Shown: positions 1 to 6,925 of the stretch, piece after piece
Numbering within the stretch: position 1 is the stretch's first letter
Layout of the letters: each line of letters begins with the position of its first letter
Made by a program: the position numbers and the translations under genes
The notes under the pieces: model-generated
Databases searched by the model: none
What the model saw: only the letters and a program-made list of their open reading frames with translations
Told to the model about the DNA's origin: nothing
Virus record (IMG/VR): IMGVR_UViG_3300005861_000247
Span: 1 to 6,925 of that record
Strand: one strand, 5' to 3'
DNA: 6,925 nt

Positions 1-148
1 TTAATGATCCGTCAAACTTCTTTGACGCTTCTTTGCCAAATGCAAAATCTCTACTAGATGCCAAGAACTTAGAAAAAACCTTGACAAGATATTCATCTAA
101 CGGAATGAGCGGGGGCAAAGCTGAAGCCGAAGCATTGTTAGTACTCAT
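1..148 (-). CDS. Hypothetical protein, N-terminal part (MSTNNASASALPPLIPLDEYLVKVFSKFLASSRDFAFGKEASKKFDGSL...), runs off the left edge
   Basis: Manual translation from the ATG at 148 is open to position 1. It is preceded on the minus strand by GTGA (SD-like) and a BRE/TATA (GAAAAGTTTTTAATAA). Confidence 0.7.
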   Translation of the reverse strand, partial: MSTNNASASALPPLIPLDEYLVKVFSKFLASSRDFAFGKEASKKFDGSL

Positions 149-161
149 TTTTTACATCACT

Positions 162-198
162 CAAACATATGTTTGCTTGTAGTTATTAAAAACTTTTC
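162..198 (-). promoter_or_regulatory. Archaeal BRE/TATA promoter plus palindrome CAAACATATGTTTG (162-175)
   Basis: Minus strand reads AAGAAAAGTTTTTAATAA...CAAACATATGTTTG. The same layout recurs at 1649-1680 and 2114-2146. Confidence 0.65.
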
Positions 199-201
199 TT
201 G

Positions 202-255
202 CTGACCTCCTCCCCGCCCTGGAAGGGCGAGGCTTTACGCCCCCTTAACCCCCTT
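202..255 (-). mobile_element. Solo IS200/IS605-type end hairpin (remnant or mini-element)
   Basis: CTGACCTCCTCCCCGCCCTGGAAGGGCGAGG is close to the reverse complement of the tnpB right end at 4158-4188. Confidence 0.7.
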
Positions 256-309
256 CTTTGTAAAAAAGAAGCTTTGTAAAAAAAGAAGGAAAAAAAAGAA
301 GAATGAAAG
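256..309 (-). terminator. Oligo-T terminator region downstream of the 278-aa ORF, containing a CTTTGTAAAAAA(A)GAAG duplication
   Basis: Several T runs on the minus strand directly after the stop at 310, typical of archaeal terminators. Confidence 0.5.
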
Positions 310-1146
310 TTAAATTATGTGAAGACCGAATAGTACTGCCAGGAGCATCATCACGACTATACCGATCACGAAGTATAGCATTATCTTACTCATTGATTGC
401 ACACGCTTACTCTCATTCTGCAACTTCAATAACTTCACTAAGTTTGCATTCATCTCCTTAACCGTCGTGGGTATTGTACTCAATATCTCCAACTCTTGCG
501 ATAGCCGACGGTTAAGTAATAATTTAGGGTCAACAGCGATAGAAAGTTTTGTGCTAGGAGATAACGTTATAGCACCAGTAATCATCTTTTTGACCTTAGC
601 CAACTGTGCTAATAATTCTGGTTCCGCTGTATCATACTCAGACACAGGTATCGACGTTTCCAGCGTCTCTAACCTTATCGCATACGGCATCGTGTTATTT
701 TTCCTTATTGTAACTAATAACGGTCTATGCACGTTGCCGTATTGTATCATTCCGACCATGGATTCCGAGGTGACTGGGACAATTAGCTCTTCGCCTGTAA
801 CTGGGTCATGGACTGTGTACAACGACGGCGATAATTTTTCACCTACGTATAGTTGAGCAGACCTAGTAGATATATCAACGTTGACAACTACAACGTCACT
901 ATTCTTAGAGCGACGGATTTGCCTTATTAGCCCATTTCTTATGGGGTCTTTCATATACGACCTTCTGAACAGTAAGTATACGGCAATAAATACTACTATC
1001 AGTATACCTAGAGCGATGAAAATGTAAATATACGGCGGAGATGATAGTATGTGAAATAACGAGAAAACCGTAACTTGTTGAGCTTGTTGATGTGGTGTTG
1101 CCGTATTCGTCAAACTTATGTTTGAAGACGGCGTTTTCAGTGCCAT
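310..1146 (-). CDS. Membrane protein (278 aa) with N- and C-terminal transmembrane helices and a coiled-coil-like segment; putative viral structural or assembly protein
   Basis: Hydrophobic segments YIYIFIALGILIVVFIAVYLLF and IMLYFVIGIVVMMLLAVLFGL. TATA (TTTTAAAA, about 1168-1175) lies roughly 25 nt upstream of the ATG. Confidence 0.8.
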   Translation of the reverse strand: MALKTPSSNISLTNTATPHQQAQQVTVFSLFHILSSPPYIYIFIALGILIVVFIAVYLLFRRSYMKDPIRNGLIRQIRRSKNSDVVVVNVDISTRSAQLYVGEKLSPSLYTVHDPVTGEELIVPVTSESMVGMIQYGNVHRPLLVTIRKNNTMPYAIRLETLETSIPVSEYDTAEPELLAQLAKVKKMITGAITLSPSTKLSIAVDPKLLLNRRLSQELEILSTIPTTVKEMNANLVKLLKLQNESKRVQSMSKIMLYFVIGIVVMMLLAVLFGLHII

Positions 1147-1221
1147 GTTAATATCTTGACAGAAGAGTTTTAAAAGAAGAAAGCGAATTCGCGAAAAAAC
1201 ACATGCTTGACTTAGAGAGTT

Positions 1222-1635
1222 TTAAGTCTTGAATTTCTCCATGATTATGGATATTATACCTGCCGCGATGAGTACTATTCCTGTGACACCCAAGAGCACG
1301 TACAGCGTTGGGAAGAAGCTGAAGAACGATACCATACCGTCTACAAGTGGGTGTGTCAAGTTATACGCTAAGGTTCCTGGCGACGGGTTGCTTATTGCTG
1401 AGGCAGTAGCTGTGGCGAAGATAGAGAGAATGAGACCGGATAGTCCTATTATCACACCGACTATCAAGAGAGCTATCGCGATCGTTGGAATGTCAAACTC
1501 GTTGGTTCCAAACACTTTTGCTAACGACCCTGCTACTCCTGGATCATGAATTCTAGTCGCTTTCTTTATCTTATGAACATTATTTTTTGCCTTTGGTGTA
1601 CGAAGGCTTACTGACGGAACTACCGAAACTGACAT
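1222..1635 (-). CDS. Putative major capsid protein precursor (137 aa, MSVSVVPS...) of the hydrophobic helical-hairpin type found in spindle-shaped and ellipsoid archaeal viruses
   Basis: The start is re-placed at ATG 1635 (GGAG SD, BRE/TATA at 1667-1680). The protein has a basic N-terminal region, then two long hydrophobic helices linked by a loop with an N-L-T sequon, and a basic C-terminus. This resembles fusellovirus VP1 and SEV1 VP4 in architecture; I have not checked it by search. Confidence 0.65.
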   Translation of the reverse strand: MSVSVVPSVSLRTPKAKNNVHKIKKATRIHDPGVAGSLAKVFGTNEFDIPTIAIALLIVGVIIGLSGLILSIFATATASAISNPSPGTLAYNLTHPLVDGMVSFFSFFPTLYVLLGVTGIVLIAAGIISIIMEKFKT

Positions 1636-1648
1636 TTTGCTCCGTCTA

Positions 1649-1680
1649 AAACATCTGTTTGAGGAATTAATAAACTTTTC
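1649..1680 (-). promoter_or_regulatory. BRE/TATA promoter (GAAAAGTTTATTAA) plus near-palindrome AAACAGATGTTT upstream of the capsid gene
   Basis: Read directly from the minus strand; matches the Sulfolobus promoter consensus. Confidence 0.7.
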
Positions 1681-1706
1681 GTTTCGCTGTCTCTGATCTG
1701 GGAAAA

Positions 1707-1774
1707 ACAAGAGAGAAGTGAAAGAGACAAGAGAGAAGTGAAAGAGAGAAGTGAATAGGAGCAAAGTGAATAGG
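1707..1774. repeat. Purine-rich tandem repeat: 2 x ACAAGAGAGAAGTGAAAGAG followed by 2 x AAGTGAATAGG
   Basis: The AAGTGAA core occurs four times, at 1716, 1736, 1749 and 1764. Confidence 0.8.
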
Positions 1775-1884
1775 GACAGTTTCAGCCCAACCAGTTAGAT
1801 AGAAAAGGTACCCCACGGGGGTGTGGCGTAGCTTGCCTACCTCGTGCGTTGAAACAAGAATTAACCCCGTCCTGTACCTTCCTG

Positions 1885-2103
1885 TTAGGTATATTTCCTG
1901 TATATTATCATGACCGCAACTAAAGCTATTGCCAAAACTACGAATGCCCACAACATATAGTTTACAGTATTTGCGACTGGTGTAAATGAACTCCCATCTA
2001 TGCTATAAAATATACCAGTAAAGTTGTTTGCCAAAACTACAATAAGCAATAAAAACGGTATTAGGACAAAAACTGCGATAAAGAATACTGCAAACGGGTT
2101 CAA
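1885..2103 (-). CDS. Small two-helix hydrophobic protein (72 aa), putative minor capsid protein (VP3-like)
   Basis: Two hydrophobic helices, an N-F-T sequon in the loop and an IIYRKYT C-terminus. TTG start preceded by GTGA and its own TATA. Confidence 0.6.
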   Translation of the reverse strand: MNPFAVFFIAVFVLIPFLLLIVVLANNFTGIFYSIDGSSFTPVANTVNYMLWAFVVLAIALVAVMIIYRKYT

Positions 2104-2113
2104 CTTTGGGTCA

Positions 2114-2146
2114 CTTAAACATATGTTTAAGCAGTGTTTAAAAAAG
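2114..2146 (-). promoter_or_regulatory. TATA (TTTTTTAAA) plus perfect 18-bp palindrome CTTAAACATATGTTTAAG (2114-2131)
   Basis: Seen directly; same motif as at 162-175 and 1649-1660. Confidence 0.65.
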
Positions 2147-2148
2147 GT

Positions 2149-2487
2149 TTATTGTGGTTTAGCGAAACTAACGGCTCCTTCTTTCAGGAGGAGTTTCCAT
2201 ATTGCGATTCTTACAAGTTCACTTACTTGTATATGGTTCTCTTCCGCAATTAGTTTTAGCCTGTCTAACGTCTCTTCATCGATTTTAACACTTGTTTGCC
2301 TCTTCTCGTCTACCGGAATGGATAGGGCTATTAGTATATCGTCCTTTGTTATACCTTCCTGGATAATGTAGTTTATAGCGTCTCTCATCACTGAAGATCT
2401 ATTCTGATTCTTAGAATCAATCAATTCAAGTGCACTACGTTCTATTCTAAACGAGACGATTCTTTTTTTCCTAACTGGGTTTTCCAT
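2149..2487 (-). CDS. Tandem ribbon-helix-helix (CopG-like) transcriptional regulator, 112 aa
   Basis: Two RHH patterns: IVSFRIERSALELID...RSSVMRDAI and TSVKIDEETLDRLKLIAEE...VSELVRIAI. Confidence 0.85.
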   Translation of the reverse strand: MENPVRKKRIVSFRIERSALELIDSKNQNRSSVMRDAINYIIQEGITKDDILIALSIPVDEKRQTSVKIDEETLDRLKLIAEENHIQVSELVRIAIWKLLLKEGAVSFAKPQ

Positions 2488-2530
2488 GATTATGTTCTTG
2501 CTTGCCAGATTATTTTTAAAATTAGAAGGG

Positions 2531-2559
2531 CTGACTTCCTCCGCATCCTGTGGGGTCAG
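2531..2559 (-). mobile_element. Degenerate IS-end remnant CTGACTTCCTCC...GGGGTCAG
   Basis: The first 12 nt are identical to the IS-end copy at 5263. Bounded by CTGAC and GTCAG like that copy. Confidence 0.45.
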
Positions 2560-2569
2560 AGAAGCAGAA

Positions 2570-2620
2570 AATCCTCACCGCTAGGTCGGGATGCTCCGTC
2601 CGTGAGGCGGGGTAGTTCAC
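2570..2620 (+). mobile_element. Right end / omegaRNA 3' remnant of a different IS200/IS605 subfamily (ends GGCGGGGTAGTTCAC)
   Basis: GC hairpin GCTCCGTCCGTGAGGCGGGGT followed by AGTTCAC, resembling Sulfolobales tnpB right ends. No tnpB gene lies directly upstream. Confidence 0.55.
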
Positions 2621-2730
2621 ACTCTACGGGAGTTAGTCCTAAAATTACCGTGAATTCAAGAGTTCACGGCAAAATAACATATAAGGTTGATCTGACAAAC
2701 GACAAACCTCGCCCCTTCTAGGGGCGGGGT

Positions 2731-2743
2731 GAAAGTTTTAAGA
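2731..2743 (+). promoter_or_regulatory. BRE/TATA promoter of tnpB (GAAAGTTTTAAGA), probably giving a leaderless transcript
   Basis: Located about 23-35 nt upstream of ATG 2766. Confidence 0.6.
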
Positions 2744-2765
2744 CTACGCATCTCTTTTCTTTCAG

Positions 2766-4145
2766 ATGCCTTCCTCTGGTCAACTCTTAGGACATGAGGA
2801 GCGGGAGCTGATTTCTCCCGCAATACCAGAGGAGGGTATCTACGAAGTTAAATATGAAAATAGGAGGGCAAATGTAGTCCGTCTTCTCCCAAACGGTTTT
2901 CAGGAAAGGAAGTTAAGGAAGTTAGCCGATGCCTCTGCCAGACTATTTAACGAAGTTAACTACGAGAGGAGGCAACAGTTCTTCCAACAACATCAAGTGG
3001 ACTTCAAATCAACATGGGACAAATATTACGAGAAGTACAAGGACGTACTGGGTGTCAACACACAAGCAGTGCTTCAGAAGAACAACGAGGCTTGGTCATC
3101 GTTCTTCTCCCTCATCAAGCTGAAGAAACAAGGAAAATTGCCATCTCACATGAACCACGTTTCACCACCACGTTATTGGAAGAAGGAGAAGAAGAGGAAG
3201 TTGATCCTGGTCGTCAGACAAGACAGATATGCTGTGGACGAGAAGAACCACAAGCTCATCCTCAAGGACTTCGATCTGGAAATAGAATTTGCTGGTAGGC
3301 TGAGGTGGTACGGTAAACAAGGTAGGCTGGAGATATACTACGACGACACAGAGAACGCATGGTACGCTTCGATCCCAGTCGAAGTAGGTGTTGAGGAGAC
3401 CAAGACGGGAAAGAAGAGCAGGTACATTGTGAGAGGAGAGAGGAAGACAATACAGATCGGATCCCCAAAGGGAAACAAGGTCGCGTCCATCGACTTAGGT
3501 ATAAACATCCTAGCGAGTGTGATAGTGGACGACGGTACTTGGCTACTCTATAAGGGCGTCAGGATCAAGGAAGACTACTTCTACCTCCAAAGGAAGATAG
3601 CTGAGGTTCAATCTCTCGTAGATACGGCAAGAAAACTAGGTGAGCACGAAGCCCAAGAAGGACTAAACATAAACAGAGAGAAGAGGAGACTCTTTAAGAA
3701 ATTGACTAGGCGTCTCCTTCACCTCTACAGGAACTTAGCTTCCGACTTACTGAAGCAACTTCACGATCAGGGTGTCTCCATCATCTACCTTGGTTATCCG
3801 TACAACATCGCACAGGACAAGGGCAACAAGTTCACCGTCAATATGTGGTCGTACCGTATGCTAATGAACATCATCGAGTTAAAGGCTCAGGAGTACGGTA
3901 TGAAGGTGTACGAAGTCGTTGAGTATAACACATCTAAGTACTGTGCTTACCACGACGTTGAAGTCAGTAGGAATCCGAGAGGAGTAGTCAGTTGTCCTAA
4001 GGGACATAAACTCCATTCAGATCTTAACGGTGCATTGAACATCCTGAAGAAAGCTGTTGGCATCGCAATTTCAACAGTGAAGAAACCGTTATCATTCCTA
4101 GTACTGCATAACGGAGTAGCACCCGTAAAGGGGTGTAACACCTGA
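2766..4145 (+). CDS. tnpB: RNA-guided endonuclease TnpB (IS200/IS605 OrfB), 459 aa
   Basis: N-terminal ARLFN motif, RuvC-I SIDLG, EYNTSKYC, Zn ribbon CAYH...CPKGH and RuvC-III HSDLNGALNI. Confidence 0.95.
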   Translation: MPSSGQLLGHEERELISPAIPEEGIYEVKYENRRANVVRLLPNGFQERKLRKLADASARLFNEVNYERRQQFFQQHQVDFKSTWDKYYEKYKDVLGVNTQAVLQKNNEAWSSFFSLIKLKKQGKLPSHMNHVSPPRYWKKEKKRKLILVVRQDRYAVDEKNHKLILKDFDLEIEFAGRLRWYGKQGRLEIYYDDTENAWYASIPVEVGVEETKTGKKSRYIVRGERKTIQIGSPKGNKVASIDLGINILASVIVDDGTWLLYKGVRIKEDYFYLQRKIAEVQSLVDTARKLGEHEAQEGLNINREKRRLFKKLTRRLLHLYRNLASDLLKQLHDQGVSIIYLGYPYNIAQDKGNKFTVNMWSYRMLMNIIELKAQEYGMKVYEVVEYNTSKYCAYHDVEVSRNPRGVVSCPKGHKLHSDLNGALNILKKAVGIAISTVKKPLSFLVLHNGVAPVKGCNT

Positions 4146-4208
4146 GACCTCGGGGAACCCCCGCCCTTCAGGGCAGGGAGGAGGTCAGTAGTAGATATCA
4201 TACAATTA
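4040..4208 (+). ncRNA. Predicted TnpB omegaRNA (reRNA): scaffold overlapping the tnpB 3' end and right end, guide from the flank after about 4188
   Basis: Inferred from established TnpB biology and the right-end hairpin. The 5' boundary is approximate. Confidence 0.55.
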
Positions 4209-4323
4209 TTATAGAATATCATAACGGCGTTCAACATCTTGCAGATCTACTTAAAGCATCAGGGTTTAACATCACGATTAAAGGAAATAAGAAGATCGGC
4301 TTGGTGTATGCAAGGCGACTAAC

Positions 4324-5283
4324 ATGAAGTATGATCCGCGAATAGCACAACTACGTTTCTTCGCATCTTTTTCAGTTGCTTTATATCATTTATGGACGCT
4401 ACAGCTACAAATACCAATAATTCCCCTCATCTTTTTTAGAGCCGGCTGGCTAGGAGTCCCTTTCTTCTTTGAATTGTCAATCTTTCTCCTTCTAAACAGG
4501 CTTGACTATAATTCATCGTTTCCACGTTATTTGAAAAGAAGGATGAAACGTATTTGGATACTTTATTTCCTCTCCGTCGTCACTGTATTCTTAGCCGACA
4601 AATACGTGTTCCATATGGGAGTAACGTATTACGACTTGACACTCCATTTTGCATTCGTTTCCTCCGTTTTTGCACCGTTTTCCTTTCAATACCTCTTCTG
4701 GTCTCTCCAGCTGGAGGAATGGATGTACTTAGCTATTCCCTTCATTCATGCAATGAACGATAAAGCAAAGTTTCAAACAGCTGTTTTATTGATCTTTATA
4801 TCGTTTTTCTACAGTCTCTTTATCGTCTTCCTCCCCTACAACGAGTTCCACTTACTTTACTTCATGCCACCCTTCTGGTTAGGGGCATACGGGTGGGGAA
4901 TAATTGCTTACCTTTTGAAGAAACAGAAAAAAGATGAACCAGCAAAAAAAGCCAAATATTTCATACTAATACTTTACGCTCAATATGTTTTTACTGCATT
5001 GATATTTTCTAATGAATTTGTATATGAGTTCCTCACAAGGTTCCTTGTGTACAACTTATCATTACCCGCTTTCGCCCTCCTTATTCTGAACCCACCTAAA
5101 GTCCTTAGTCGTGTAACAGTCTTCCTGGGCGAGGTGAGCTACGGGGTTTATTTGTGGACTTTGCTATTCCAGGAACTTTTTGGGGTAACTGGAATAGTTT
5201 ACGGCATCCTAACCGCAATTGCTACAGAGTTCCCATTAAGAAGAAGAGAGATAACAAACAGACTGACTTCCTCCCCGCCCTGA
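4324..5283 (+). CDS. Acyltransferase family 3 (OafA-like) polytopic membrane protein, 319 aa
   Basis: Motifs LRFFA..SVALYH, GWLGVPFFFELS, KRRMKRIW, FWSLQLEEWMY and LGEVSYGVYLW, plus many transmembrane helices. Confidence 0.9.
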   Translation: MKYDPRIAQLRFFASFSVALYHLWTLQLQIPIIPLIFFRAGWLGVPFFFELSIFLLLNRLDYNSSFPRYLKRRMKRIWILYFLSVVTVFLADKYVFHMGVTYYDLTLHFAFVSSVFAPFSFQYLFWSLQLEEWMYLAIPFIHAMNDKAKFQTAVLLIFISFFYSLFIVFLPYNEFHLLYFMPPFWLGAYGWGIIAYLLKKQKKDEPAKKAKYFILILYAQYVFTALIFSNEFVYEFLTRFLVYNLSLPAFALLILNPPKVLSRVTVFLGEVSYGVYLWTLLFQELFGVTGIVYGILTAIATEFPLRRREITNRLTSSPP

Positions 5284-5311
5284 AGGGCGGTGGTTCCCCC
5301 AGGACGGGTCA
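5263..5311 (-). mobile_element. About 49-bp mini IS200/IS605 element (solo right end), inverted relative to the tnpB element
   Basis: Reverse complement GGGGAACCACCGCCCTTCAGGGCGGGGAGGAAGTCAG versus 4152-4188 GGGGAACCCCCGCCCTTCAGGGCAGGGAGGAGGTCAG: 3 mismatches in 37 nt. Confidence 0.85.
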
Positions 5312-5766
5312 GTGTGCAAGGCATCGATTATTGACTTCCCGGTTTGCTTGTGTGCAATTTCACTATTATCGATGGTATCGCTTGCTTACGTGCAGTTAAG
5401 CATTTATTGACACCGTAGCTTGTTGGTGTGCGACTTCACGGTTATTGATTAGATTTGTTGCTGGCGTACATGGAGACATCTGTTGAAGTAACTTCTTGCT
5501 GGTGTGCAACTGCTCATTTATTGACGTGATATCTTGCTCATGTGCAAGTGTGTTTTTAAGCTTGTTTGTGTGCAATTATTTTCTTGTTGAGCAATTCGTT
5601 TGCTTGTGTGCAGACGTATGTTTATTGACCTTTTCCGTTGCTTGTGTGCAGATATAGCCTAATTGAGCGTGTCTCTTGCTTATGTGCAAGCGGTGAATTA
5701 TTGAATTTTTGCTTTGCTTTAGTGCATATACACCTCTTTATTGAACTGTCTTATTGCTTATGTGCG
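5312..5766 (-). ncRNA. TIGR-like dual-repeat, dual-spacer guide RNA array: 12 units with a 38-nt period
   Basis: Plus-strand long repeat TTGCTTGTGTGCA (consensus) at 5344, 5382, 5420, 5458, 5496, 5534, 5562, 5600, 5638, 5676, 5714 and 5754, with a partial copy at 5312. Short repeat TTATTGA (consensus) at 5328, 5366, 5404, 5442, 5480, 5518, 5584, 5622, 5660, 5698 and 5738. Unique 9-nt spacers lie between them. Confidence 0.9.
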
Positions 5767-5767
5767 A

Positions 5768-6799
5768 TTATTCAATAATCTTTTTCTTCTTAAGCCATGT
5801 TGTCACCTCATCCCTATTTATCCCTAACTCTTCTATAGTTTTCTCAAACATCGCCTTGTATTTAGTAGTCTTCCTGTCAACATAATAGTCTGTAATTGGT
5901 GACTCTATGAAGTCCTCATGCTTCTTGAGGACTTCGTATTCCTTCCCCAGAACTACCTTATAGGCTTCAGTTAGTGGCACACCTTCGCGATAATGCAGGG
6001 AGATGGCAAAGTATTGTGATAATAGTAAGGATATTGCTTTCCTAACTGCTGTCCTCTGTACTCTTAGCTTAGACCAGTCTGGATGCTTGACCGTGATTTC
6101 TTCCTTAAATGATTTTATTATCTTAGCGTAAACGCCTCCAGCTAATATAAGATTGTTAGCTAGGATCCCAAGCAAAAACGTCTTAACAGTTCTGTTGTAC
6201 TTAACGTTTCTCGCTGAAGTACCAAAAAGTTTCATCCCGTCGTTAGGGCATAACCAGCCATCTTTCGAGGGAACGGCTGGTTTCCCATTCGAGGACTCAC
6301 CGGCGTAATAATAATATCCGCACTTCGGACACTGGAACATTACAGCTAAACCAGCGTACTTCCTGAATTTATTGATGTTATAATCAAACCATGGTGGATA
6401 CGCATAAACGATGAGTCTAGAAGCGTTAGCGGATCCTATCCCGCTAATAAACGTCAGGAATTTAGTAAATTCAGGGAATTTGGTAACAGTGTCAGCGATA
6501 AGTCCTTCAACTGTCTCTTGTTGTCTGAGCAGTTCCATGAACCTCTCTATGAGGTCATTAGATGGTGTTTCTTCAACAATTTTCACTGGCTCACCGCATA
6601 TAGGGCAGTTATCGCGTTTTTCGTCTTCCTTAAGTAATATCATATGGTCGTTCTTACATACAGAATATCTCCTGAGGAAGACCCAATCATTTTTCTCTTT
6701 TTTTGCCCCCATCCTGTTTCCAAATGCAATACGTACTTTTATCAAATCGTCCCTGAACGCTACCAAATCTTTTAAATACATTAGATCTGCCTCACCCAT
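5768..6799 (-). CDS. Tas-like (TasA-type) protein: IS110/Nop-related RNA-binding core without a DEDD/RuvC domain, with two Zn-binding insertions, 343 aa
   Basis: Coiled-coil helix LKDLVAFRDDLIKVRIAFGNRM, then FLTFISGIGSANASRLI, KFRKYAGL, YNRTVKTFL and RTAVRKAISLLL, all IS110/Transposase_20-like motifs. Zn ligands CKNDH/CPIC and CPKC/CPND. Directly adjacent to the array. Confidence 0.8.
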   Translation of the reverse strand: MGEADLMYLKDLVAFRDDLIKVRIAFGNRMGAKKEKNDWVFLRRYSVCKNDHMILLKEDEKRDNCPICGEPVKIVEETPSNDLIERFMELLRQQETVEGLIADTVTKFPEFTKFLTFISGIGSANASRLIVYAYPPWFDYNINKFRKYAGLAVMFQCPKCGYYYYAGESSNGKPAVPSKDGWLCPNDGMKLFGTSARNVKYNRTVKTFLLGILANNLILAGGVYAKIIKSFKEEITVKHPDWSKLRVQRTAVRKAISLLLSQYFAISLHYREGVPLTEAYKVVLGKEYEVLKKHEDFIESPITDYYVDRKTTKYKAMFEKTIEELGINRDEVTTWLKKKKIIE

Positions 6800-6805
6800 T
6801 CCTGA

Positions 6806-6925
6806 TCACATCTTCGCGATGATGTATAGATAGTCTTCCCTGAGTTGCTTATATTTCACGTAAGCTTCGTCTGGCATTAGCCTTGGTGTATACACTATAT
6901 GCGAATACTTCTTTTTTAGCTCGTT
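6806..6925 (-). CDS. C-terminal end of an upstream hypothetical protein (...NELKKKYSHIVYTPRLMPDEAYVKYKQLREDYLYIIAKM*), probably co-transcribed with the Tas-like gene
   Basis: Manual translation gives a frame open from the right edge to TGA at 6806, 6 nt before ATG 6799. Confidence 0.65.
   Translation of the reverse strand, partial: NELKKKYSHIVYTPRLMPDEAYVKYKQLREDYLYIIAKM

Follow-up and report, generated by a model that had tools for sequence, protein, structure and literature searches.

A probable nuclease-less, dual-repeat TIGR-TasA system with zinc ribbons in a spindle-shaped virus of the Sulfolobales

INTRODUCTION

TIGR-Tas systems, first described in 2025, consist of an array in which two alternating repeats of 8-12 nucleotides (nt) separate 9-nt spacers, placed beside a gene for a Nop-domain Tas protein (Faure et al. 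2025), and the Pfam profile Transposase_20 is one of those used for defining Tas. In the published dual-repeat systems tandem spacers target opposite strands, the guide RNAs (tigRNAs) are known to be cut in the middle of the edge repeat, and the dual-repeat Tas proteins are described in the TIGR-Tas literature as a compact core with minimal variation. Cleavage by TasR leaves 8-nt 3' overhangs, SpTasH cuts its own precursor using Y289 and H296 in a C-terminal loop, and the TasA proteins MbTasA and PlTasA bind target DNA and repress transcription reversibly in a guide-dependent manner. Here we analyse a stretch of 6,925 nt from IMG/VR record IMGVR_UViG_3300005861_000247 (positions 1 to 6,925), called the window below, on the minus strand of which a first-pass annotation, made from the letters alone, had reported a nuclease-less Nop/IS110-type gene followed by an array with two spacers per unit. 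We conclude that this locus, consisting of a gene that we call tas and its array, is very probably a dual-repeat nuclease-less TIGR-TasA system of a Sulfolobales spindle-shaped (bicaudavirus-like) virus, which would carry out RNA-guided DNA binding without cutting.

A related locus was on record before TIGR-Tas was recognised. The 2016 entry of Acidianus tailed spindle virus (ATSV, KU645528; Hochstein et al. 2016) annotates a 915-base-pair (bp) repeat region directly 3' of the gene ATSV_B343, and Faure et al. 2025 cite this repeat region as an earlier-seen TIGR-like array of an archaeal virus. The kind of system is already known, its clade had been seen through the ATSV locus, and the locus described here is not a new class.

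RESULTS

A dual-repeat array starts one nucleotide after the tas gene

The tas open reading frame (5768..6799, minus strand) encodes 343 amino acids (aa). Downstream of it on the same strand, at 5312..5766, lies a dual-repeat TIGR array of 12 units and a terminal truncated edge repeat, each unit being laid out 5' to 3' as an edge repeat of 13 nt, spacer A of 9 nt, a loop repeat of 7 nt and spacer B of 9 nt, with the sequence TGCACAYNAGCAA for the edge, an N9 spacer, TCAATAA for the loop and a second N9 spacer. Sequence parsing found the 12 edge repeats on the minus strand with at most 3 mismatches each from TGCACACAAGCAA, starting at 5766, 5726, 5688, 5650, 5612, 5574, 5546, 5508, 5470, 5432, 5394 and 5356, so that the edge-to-edge spacing is 38 nt in nine of the eleven intervals. 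Ten units are regular at 38 nt; unit 1 measures 40 nt and has a spacer B of 11 nt, and unit 6, without spacer A and loop repeat, measures 28 nt. Eleven loop repeats (TCAATAA, at most 2 mismatches) each stand 9 nt past their edge. The combined edge-N9-loop pattern (at most 3 mismatches) was matched 11 times, on the minus strand only, against a chance expectation of 0.00 from 200 dinucleotide-preserving shuffles, and the repeat finder TRF reports a period of 38/76 for the array. Only a single base, T5767, separates the stop codon of tas (TAA, 5770-5768) from the first edge at 5766, and at its other end the array closes with a partial 13th edge, TGCACAC (5318-5312), followed by a GC-rich hairpin (5290-5275) and then a T-rich tract. 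Re-parsing thus returned the 12 edge/N9/loop/N9 units of the first-pass annotation, its position for the array start, 1 nt past the stop codon, and exactly its list of spacers, including the missing spacer A of unit 6; what had been observed in the sequence is correct in every detail.

The Tas protein has a Nop-type fold and no nuclease domain

To characterise the protein we built an AlphaFold2 model on 29 of its homologs (pLDDT 88.8, pTM 0.83). In the model two long helices (aa 3-29 and 81-105) enclose a first beta module (32-77); a helical domain (109-149), a second beta module (154-194), helices up to residue 291, an extended loop (292-311) and two short C-terminal helices follow. The two long helices form the coiled coil, residues 109-311 make up a Nop-like C-terminal domain, and the remaining residues (312-343) add two C-terminal helices with a basic end.

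Comparison of this model with the PDB by Foldseek gave as best match the TIGR-TasR complex 9mty (E 1e-4), followed by three TasH entries (21kl, 9vzx and 9w03) and then by the IS621 and ISCro4 recombinases, with Foldseek probabilities of 0.99-1.00 for TasR, TasH, IS621 and ISCro4 and an E value of 9e-3 for IS621; no other credible match was found in the PDB beyond these. In a viral structure library the best match was an 85%-identical protein, presumably the ATSV ortholog, and phage proteins labelled as IS110 family came next. Sequence profiles point the same way. A profile of the close family (A1) has TasR as its sole significant match among 177,635 PDB sequences (E 8e-5) and recovers 300 relatives among 1.84 billion representative sequences, while a profile made from a wider set that includes distant relatives (A2) matches TasR at 7e-47, TasH at 6e-30 and IS621 at 2e-4 among PDB sequences. 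Within that wider set, Pfam Transposase_20 is present in 21 of 60 aligned members. The model, Foldseek and the profiles therefore all match a Nop-type fold, with coiled-coil dimerisation helices and an RNA-binding C-terminal domain, which upholds the Nop/IS110 relationship proposed at first pass.

A search for nuclease domains with Pfam, with E values up to 1, gave no match in the protein and neither RuvC nor HNH, and the model opens at residue 3 with a helix of the coiled coil. Its sole non-helical modules are the two zinc ribbons, each of which has a single metal site. Since RuvC and HNH are missing and the chain starts at the coiled coil, the protein is of the nuclease-less TasA type, as had been suggested from the letters. 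Taken together, protein fold, profile homology and array architecture agree in placing the locus in TIGR-Tas, in the TasA-type dual-repeat class.

Seventy-one full-length homologs with 62-100% identity were found in hot-spring metagenomes and metagenome-assembled genomes, and none of these 71 carries a Pfam domain. It had been expected that an automated pipeline would label such a protein a truncated IS110 transposase; that expectation did not hold, as Pfam yields weak zinc ribbons for the window's protein and the source names of the close homologs are 'hypothetical', 'Zn-ribbon protein' and 'rubredoxin'.

Two zinc ribbons and a putative processing loop

Zinc ribbon 1 (aa 30-78, 6566..6712, minus strand) forms beta strands at residues 32-77 of the model and is placed at the coiled-coil tip, and its ligands C48, H52, C65 and C68 are invariant among 29 homologs. 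Zinc ribbon 2 (aa 154-194, 6218..6340, minus strand) lies inside the Nop C-terminal domain, past a conserved GLAV motif, and C157, C160, C184 and D187 are likewise invariant in this set. In the profile alignment both stretches are gaps in TasR, which has a short loop at the position of ribbon 2. Weak matches link ribbon 1 to zinc-ribbon entries of Pfam and the PDB and ribbon 2 to rubredoxin-like ones. When 53 distant relatives were sampled, cysteine motifs turned up at both insert positions in about 10, the nearest to this family, and most of the others are without them.

The C-terminal extended-loop region (aa 280-311, 5867..5962, minus strand) contains a candidate Tyr/His dyad for processing of the tigRNA precursor, Y280 and H294. 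Y280 is aligned to the catalytic Y289 of SpTasH and is near-invariant in the homologs, and H294, invariant among the same 29 homologs, is part of an H-E-D-F-I-x-x-P motif which resembles H-V-D-Y-I-K-P-P of TasR and the corresponding His of the nearest relatives. Judged by these alignments, Y280 and H294 are likely candidates for the processing dyad.

Guide-type arrays accompany tas throughout the close family

We compared the window with ATSV, two JGI contigs (loci L002 and L004) and all 12 IMG/VR loci encoding a close homolog. All 14 non-redundant close-homolog loci carry the same array, of 3-51 units, on the same strand just downstream of tas. The family logo, drawn from 251 regular 38-nt units, reads TGCACAYNAGCAA, N9, TCAATAA, N9, most repeat columns holding 1.3-2 bits and spacer columns 0-0.36 bits; the repeat columns that hold less (0.6-1.2 bits) are positions 2-3 of the loop and two variable positions in the middle of the edge. 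Edge positions 7 and 8, in mid-edge, are the least conserved of the edge and coincide with the cut site of known tigRNAs, so that a guide of about 38 nt is predicted. Both spacers have (C/U)AA on their 5' side and U(C/G) on their 3' side, as compared with CCA/UG in TasR, and this likeness of the flanking motifs looks like the pseudo-symmetry expected of a guide held by a symmetric dimer. Possible pairs are U1-A12 and U23-A28, and GCA (positions 10-12) is complementary to UGC (positions 1-3) of the next edge; these columns are nearly invariant and so carry no covariation signal.

Relatives share and exchange units. Unit 3 of the window is identical to a unit of L007, unit 11 is one base off another L007 unit, and some units unite a spacer A with the spacer B of the following unit, which is as expected if recombination took place between loop repeats. 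With common units, point-diverged units and loop-repeat recombinants, the arrays evolve in the manner of guide arrays. The ATSV locus is especially close: ATSV_B343 is an ortholog, likewise of 343 aa (82% nucleotide and about 85% protein identity), its array has identical edge and loop repeats and the same 38-nt unit, starts right after the stop and ends in a truncated edge with a GTCAG hairpin, and spacer B CCGTGAAGT is common to both loci, whereas every other spacer differs, ATSV has 24 units as against 12 in the window, and the flanking genes differ on both sides. A zinc-ribbon relative with 26% identity, P0077, has a dual-repeat array of its own with a different edge repeat, TGCGAGCCG.

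Some further features of these arrays were noted. In the family arrays of the window, L001, L002 and L007-L016, spacer A is rich in A and purine (A 40%, G 20%), which spacer B is not (A 32%, G 17%). A conserved terminal unit, which the window is without, is found in ATSV, L002 and L010; the unit is slightly degenerate, with the loop TTCAACA, and also occurs in L008, L009, L011 and L015. L012 has extra edge-like repeat runs of 2 and 5 copies (3558-3645 and 14541-14705) outside its main array. The P0077 array (L106 1980-2293), whose period is about 38 and whose edge reads TGCGAGCC(G/A), begins inside the last codons of the gene.

The tas-array module behaves like a cassette

Patches of the window are 78-87% identical to the Sulfolobus monocaudaviruses SMV1, SMV3 and SMV4 and 82% identical to ATSV; these similarities, together with the source of the record (IMG/VR UViG 3300005861_000247), bear out the origin in a thermophilic virus that had been surmised at first pass. 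In place of window positions 5268-6805, which hold hairpin, array and tas, SMV1 has a 68-bp intergenic spacer (L052 2206-2273), bordered on one side by the acyltransferase gene and on the other by the end of a gene with an ATPase domain; on either side of this spacer the flanking sequence is 83-95% identical to the window. No tas was found in SMV1 or in the first 50 kb of SMV3 and SMV4, and in ATSV the tas-array module lies between other genes than in the window. Being present in the window, replaced in SMV1 and located elsewhere in ATSV, the module shows cassette-like behaviour.

The last truncated edge repeat is fused to a right-end-like GC-rich hairpin with a UUCA loop that ends in GTCAG (5263..5311, minus strand). 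It scores 30.1 bits (E 0.0011) against the Rfam family HgcC (RF00062), below the gathering score of 50, and aligns with the right end of the TnpB element of the window; the junction with the truncated edge lies in a short CACAC / CAC(C)TGA similarity. In the literature HgcC is tied to the right-end tetraloop of IS1341-type tnpB elements. The window has two solo right-end-like hairpin copies, at 189-273 and at 5263-5340 (both on the minus strand), conserved to GTCAG. Among the family arrays only those of the window and ATSV, where the copy is shorter, end in the hairpin, and the others end T-rich without it. We therefore rejected the idea that the hairpin is an integral part of TIGR. An origin from a tRNA or attachment site was also rejected, no tRNA having been found in the window. 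Folding of the 106-nt stretch around the hairpin (5240-5345) was not significantly better than that of shuffles (z -0.87). On its sequence similarities, the hairpin is probably an IS200/IS605 right-end-like (omegaRNA- or HgcC-like) mobile-element fragment that would now form the 3' end of the array transcript.

Several neighbouring features concern mobile elements. The TnpB of the window (459 aa, 2766-4145, plus strand) matches OrfB_IS605 (E 1e-22) and has a Cas12f1-like TNB domain, and its 3' end together with the right end (4053-4200, plus strand) matches Rfam HgcC RF00062 below threshold, in an omegaRNA / IS200-605 right-end arrangement. No tnpA was seen in the window, and SMV1 has the element MITE-SMN2 at the corresponding place. 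Further right-end-like hairpin copies are scattered across related contigs. A ribbon-helix-helix (CopG-type) protein of 112 aa (2149-2487, minus strand) is conserved in SMV1 beside the mobile-element site. An acyltransferase gene (4324-5283, plus strand; Acyl_transf_3, E 2e-21) runs convergently towards the array; the hairpin loop contains the stop codon of this gene, whose last residues would thus be encoded by the putative mobile-element fragment.

DISCUSSION

Comparison with described systems

Among solved structures TaTasR of a Thermoproteota archaeon (9mty) is the best match to the Tas protein both by structure and by sequence. The two have in common the coiled coil, a GIGP helix-hairpin-helix region, helices at the C-terminus and, in the loop, the motif H-x-D-[YF]-I-x-x-P, but TaTasR carries a RuvC nuclease at its N-terminus and lacks zinc ribbons, whereas the protein of the window begins at the coiled coil. 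Described dual-repeat TIGR-TasA systems, such as FpTasA of Flavonifractor plautii, have a unit of 36 nt; the present family has 38 nt with an edge of 13 and a loop of 7, adds two zinc-ribbon insertions, flanks its spacers with ..AA / U.. rather than CCA / UG, and is hosted here by a hyperthermophilic archaeal virus. The IS110/IS621 recombinases also have a Nop-like RNA-binding C-terminal domain, to which the similarity is weaker (Foldseek E 9e-3, profile 2e-4). IS110 transposases combine an N-terminal DEDD/RuvC-like catalytic domain with a C-terminal domain that holds a catalytic Ser, and their transposon encodes one bridge RNA; the Tas protein is without a DEDD/RuvC domain and matches neither DEDD_Tnp_IS110 nor Transposase_20, many small guides stand in an array in place of a single two-loop bridge RNA, and no transposon-end structure surrounds tas.

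Two more distant likenesses deserve mention. The archaeal box C/D small ribonucleoprotein (Nop5-fibrillarin-L7Ae) resembles Tas in its Nop superfamily fold, its two-guide RNA and the short anchors that flank the guides, but at the present locus the guides are arrayed and hypervariable, with no K-turn boxes, and the protein has no fibrillarin-binding N-terminal domain. With CRISPR the locus shares a repeat-spacer logic, an array that turns over as units are lost or recombine, and a terminal unit that is degenerate or conserved. It differs by two alternating repeats (13 and 7 nt) and 9-nt spacers, where CRISPR has a single repeat of about 25-36 nt and spacers of like size, and by the lack of cas genes among the genes of the window. 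The 'possible viral CRISPR locus' of ATSV (L018 11703-11992) has a different short repeat, of the GGAAGAACTAAAAG type, with a GC-rich hairpin inside, and is unrelated to the TIGR array.

As far as we have checked, the zinc ribbons, the 38-nt unit and the cassette behaviour are undescribed details. The word 'zinc' was not found in the text of the TIGR-Tas papers searched, and the supplement text of Faure et al. mentions neither Acidianus nor KU645528 nor zinc.

A proposed mechanism

By homology with characterised Tas proteins we propose how the locus may be transcribed and processed, how long its guides would be, and what their binding to DNA could do for the virus. As tas begins 6 nt beyond the stop codon of the preceding gene, and the array 1 nt beyond tas, the gene and the array would be co-transcribed into one minus-strand RNA. 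A Tas dimer would bind every unit, and cuts within the edge repeats, probably made by the Y280/H294 loop, would release from the precursor guides of about 38 nt with the structure (N)AGCAA / spacer A / UCAAUAA / spacer B / UGCACAY, in which the ..AA 5' and the U.. 3' of each spacer could act as box C-like and box D-like anchors. On the target DNA, spacer A would pair with one strand and, directly beside this site, spacer B with the other. Given the 8-nt 3' overhangs left by TasR, one target strand should show the sequence of spacer A and then that of spacer B in reverse complement, a gap of 0-2 bp between the two being tolerated. Lacking a nuclease, the complex would bind and bend DNA at 18-bp sites and so block transcription or replication without cutting.

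Evidence against the proposed reading

A number of observations weigh against a TIGR-TasA system that works in this way. The Tas protein itself has no direct Pfam match, sub-threshold zinc-ribbon matches being all that Pfam returns, and a single-sequence search of PDB sequences gave nothing useful beyond weak zinc-ribbon matches, so that its homology is detectable through profiles and the structure model. TM-scores to TasR and TasH are moderate (0.45-0.63), due in part to the two zinc-ribbon insertions. The unit of 38 nt departs from the 'uniform 36 nt' reported for dual-repeat systems, and the repeats of 13 and 7 nt are slightly beyond the published range of 8-12 nt. In the putative processing loop, the position strictly aligned to the catalytic His is K286 in this family, and the assignment of H294 relies on a motif match past an 8-residue insertion. 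The first-pass annotation had named homologs without arrays as contrary evidence; arrays stand at every close-homolog locus, the exception being the 38%-identical P0072, for which no dual-repeat array was found on its 8.5-kb contig. As to P0072 itself (L005 291-1698), it comes from the same sample as the window and has both zinc-ribbon motifs, and upstream of its gene, ending about 40 nt away on the same strand, lies an HgcC-like element (L005 506-603, 30.8 bits).

Searches for targets belong to the same side of the balance. We used shuffled A/B pairings as the null. When the 24 spacer pairs of ATSV were compared with its full 70.8-kb genome, the best match was 15/18, equal to the shuffled level. 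The 201 distinct spacer pairs of the family were compared with 183 kb of related contigs and with SMV1, SMV3 and SMV4, in the published geometry (spacer A joined to spacer B in reverse complement, gap 0-2), in an alternative geometry and with a same-strand control, and were indistinguishable from shuffled pairs. Thus there is no obvious targeting of the own genome or of cultured relatives. Public collections were scanned by exact matching, which mismatched targets escape: seven window units gave 17 chance-level matches in IMG/VR, to contigs of tailed phages, giant viruses and otherwise unrelated origin; unit 3 gave 27 chance-level matches of 42-70% GC in JGI metagenomes; and unit 11 gave 52 chance-level matches in GTDB genomes, nearly all in bacteria and none in Sulfolobales. 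In neither the IMG/VR nor the JGI scan did a match come from the samples of the family. Hence the 18-mer search by which competing viruses or host genes were to be recognised as targets returned no match above chance in the sets scanned. Targets with mismatches in a host or in another virus are possible.

Alternative explanations

The nearest alternative keeps a genuine TIGR-Tas ribonucleoprotein and lets the zinc ribbons or the basic C-terminal helices recruit a partner, be it a trans-acting nuclease, the viral integrase or a protein of partition or replication; the guides would then direct cutting, integration or segregation. The two invariant zinc ribbons and the C-terminal extension, all missing in TasR, could be understood in this way, as could the differing genomic contexts of the cassette in the window, ATSV and L002, and Faure et al. 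discuss integrase-aid and ParB-linked roles of TasA. However, there is no conserved partner gene, the neighbours of tas differing among the window, ATSV, L002 and L004, and the characterised TasA proteins repress without partners; we consider partner recruitment unlikely. It is yet less likely that Tas acts as a Nop5 together with host fibrillarin and L7Ae, the array supplying box C/D-like guides for RNA modification or RNA binding. Archaeal hosts do possess the box C/D machinery, Tas and Nop5 have the Nop fold in common, and so have tigRNAs and box C/D sRNAs the two-guide layout, but the Tas protein is without the N-terminal fibrillarin-binding domain of Nop5, Nop5 structures are not among its Foldseek matches as TasR, TasH and IS621 are, the repeats contain no RUGAUGA/CUGA K-turn boxes, and TasR is inactive on RNA substrates according to the literature.

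Two further explanations do without guide RNA, and to both we give hardly any credence. The repeats could act as DNA, for instance as iterons or as sites bound by the zinc-ribbon protein where replication starts or packaging takes place, given that a zinc-ribbon protein adjoins tandem short repeats and that the ATSV annotation speaks of a plain repeat region. Such sites would sit poorly with the strict linkage of strand and position 3' of tas in 14 loci, with 9-nt spacers that are variable and free of information, with the turnover of units between relatives, and with a protein that is clearly homologous to RNA-guided Tas proteins. The locus could also be a decaying relic, a truncated IS110-type transposase next to a degenerate repeat tract with no present function; the distant similarity to the C-terminal domain of IS110, the truncated unit 6, the irregular unit 1 and an array end broken by an IS200/605-like fragment might be read as decay. 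The 71 full-length homologs with their many invariant residues, those of both zinc sites included, speak against this, every close relative keeps an array, of up to 51 units, and the model shows no trace of a recently lost DEDD/RuvC domain. A dual-repeat TIGR-TasA system that binds DNA under RNA guidance is thus our preferred reading of the locus.

Significance

More tentatively, and with doubt outweighing confidence, the family might represent a structurally distinct, zinc-ribbon-bearing subtype of dual-repeat TasA with 38-nt guides, seemingly limited to hyperthermophilic Thermoproteota, in their viruses and elements, in which the ribbons would add a function new to TIGR-Tas and the cassette would move among bicaudaviruses. 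If this is true, the ribbons might clamp target DNA at high temperature or recruit a host transcription or replication factor, and the family would offer a native archaeal virus-host setting for testing the natural role of TasA. It comprises at least 14 loci with 201 distinct spacer pairs from Yellowstone-type acidic hot springs, and the window's protein may be a thermostable TasA with zinc-ribbon additions. The complete ATSV genome and the cassette-less relatives SMV1, SMV3 and SMV4 make a good natural comparison set for the role that a nuclease-less TasA plays in a virus.

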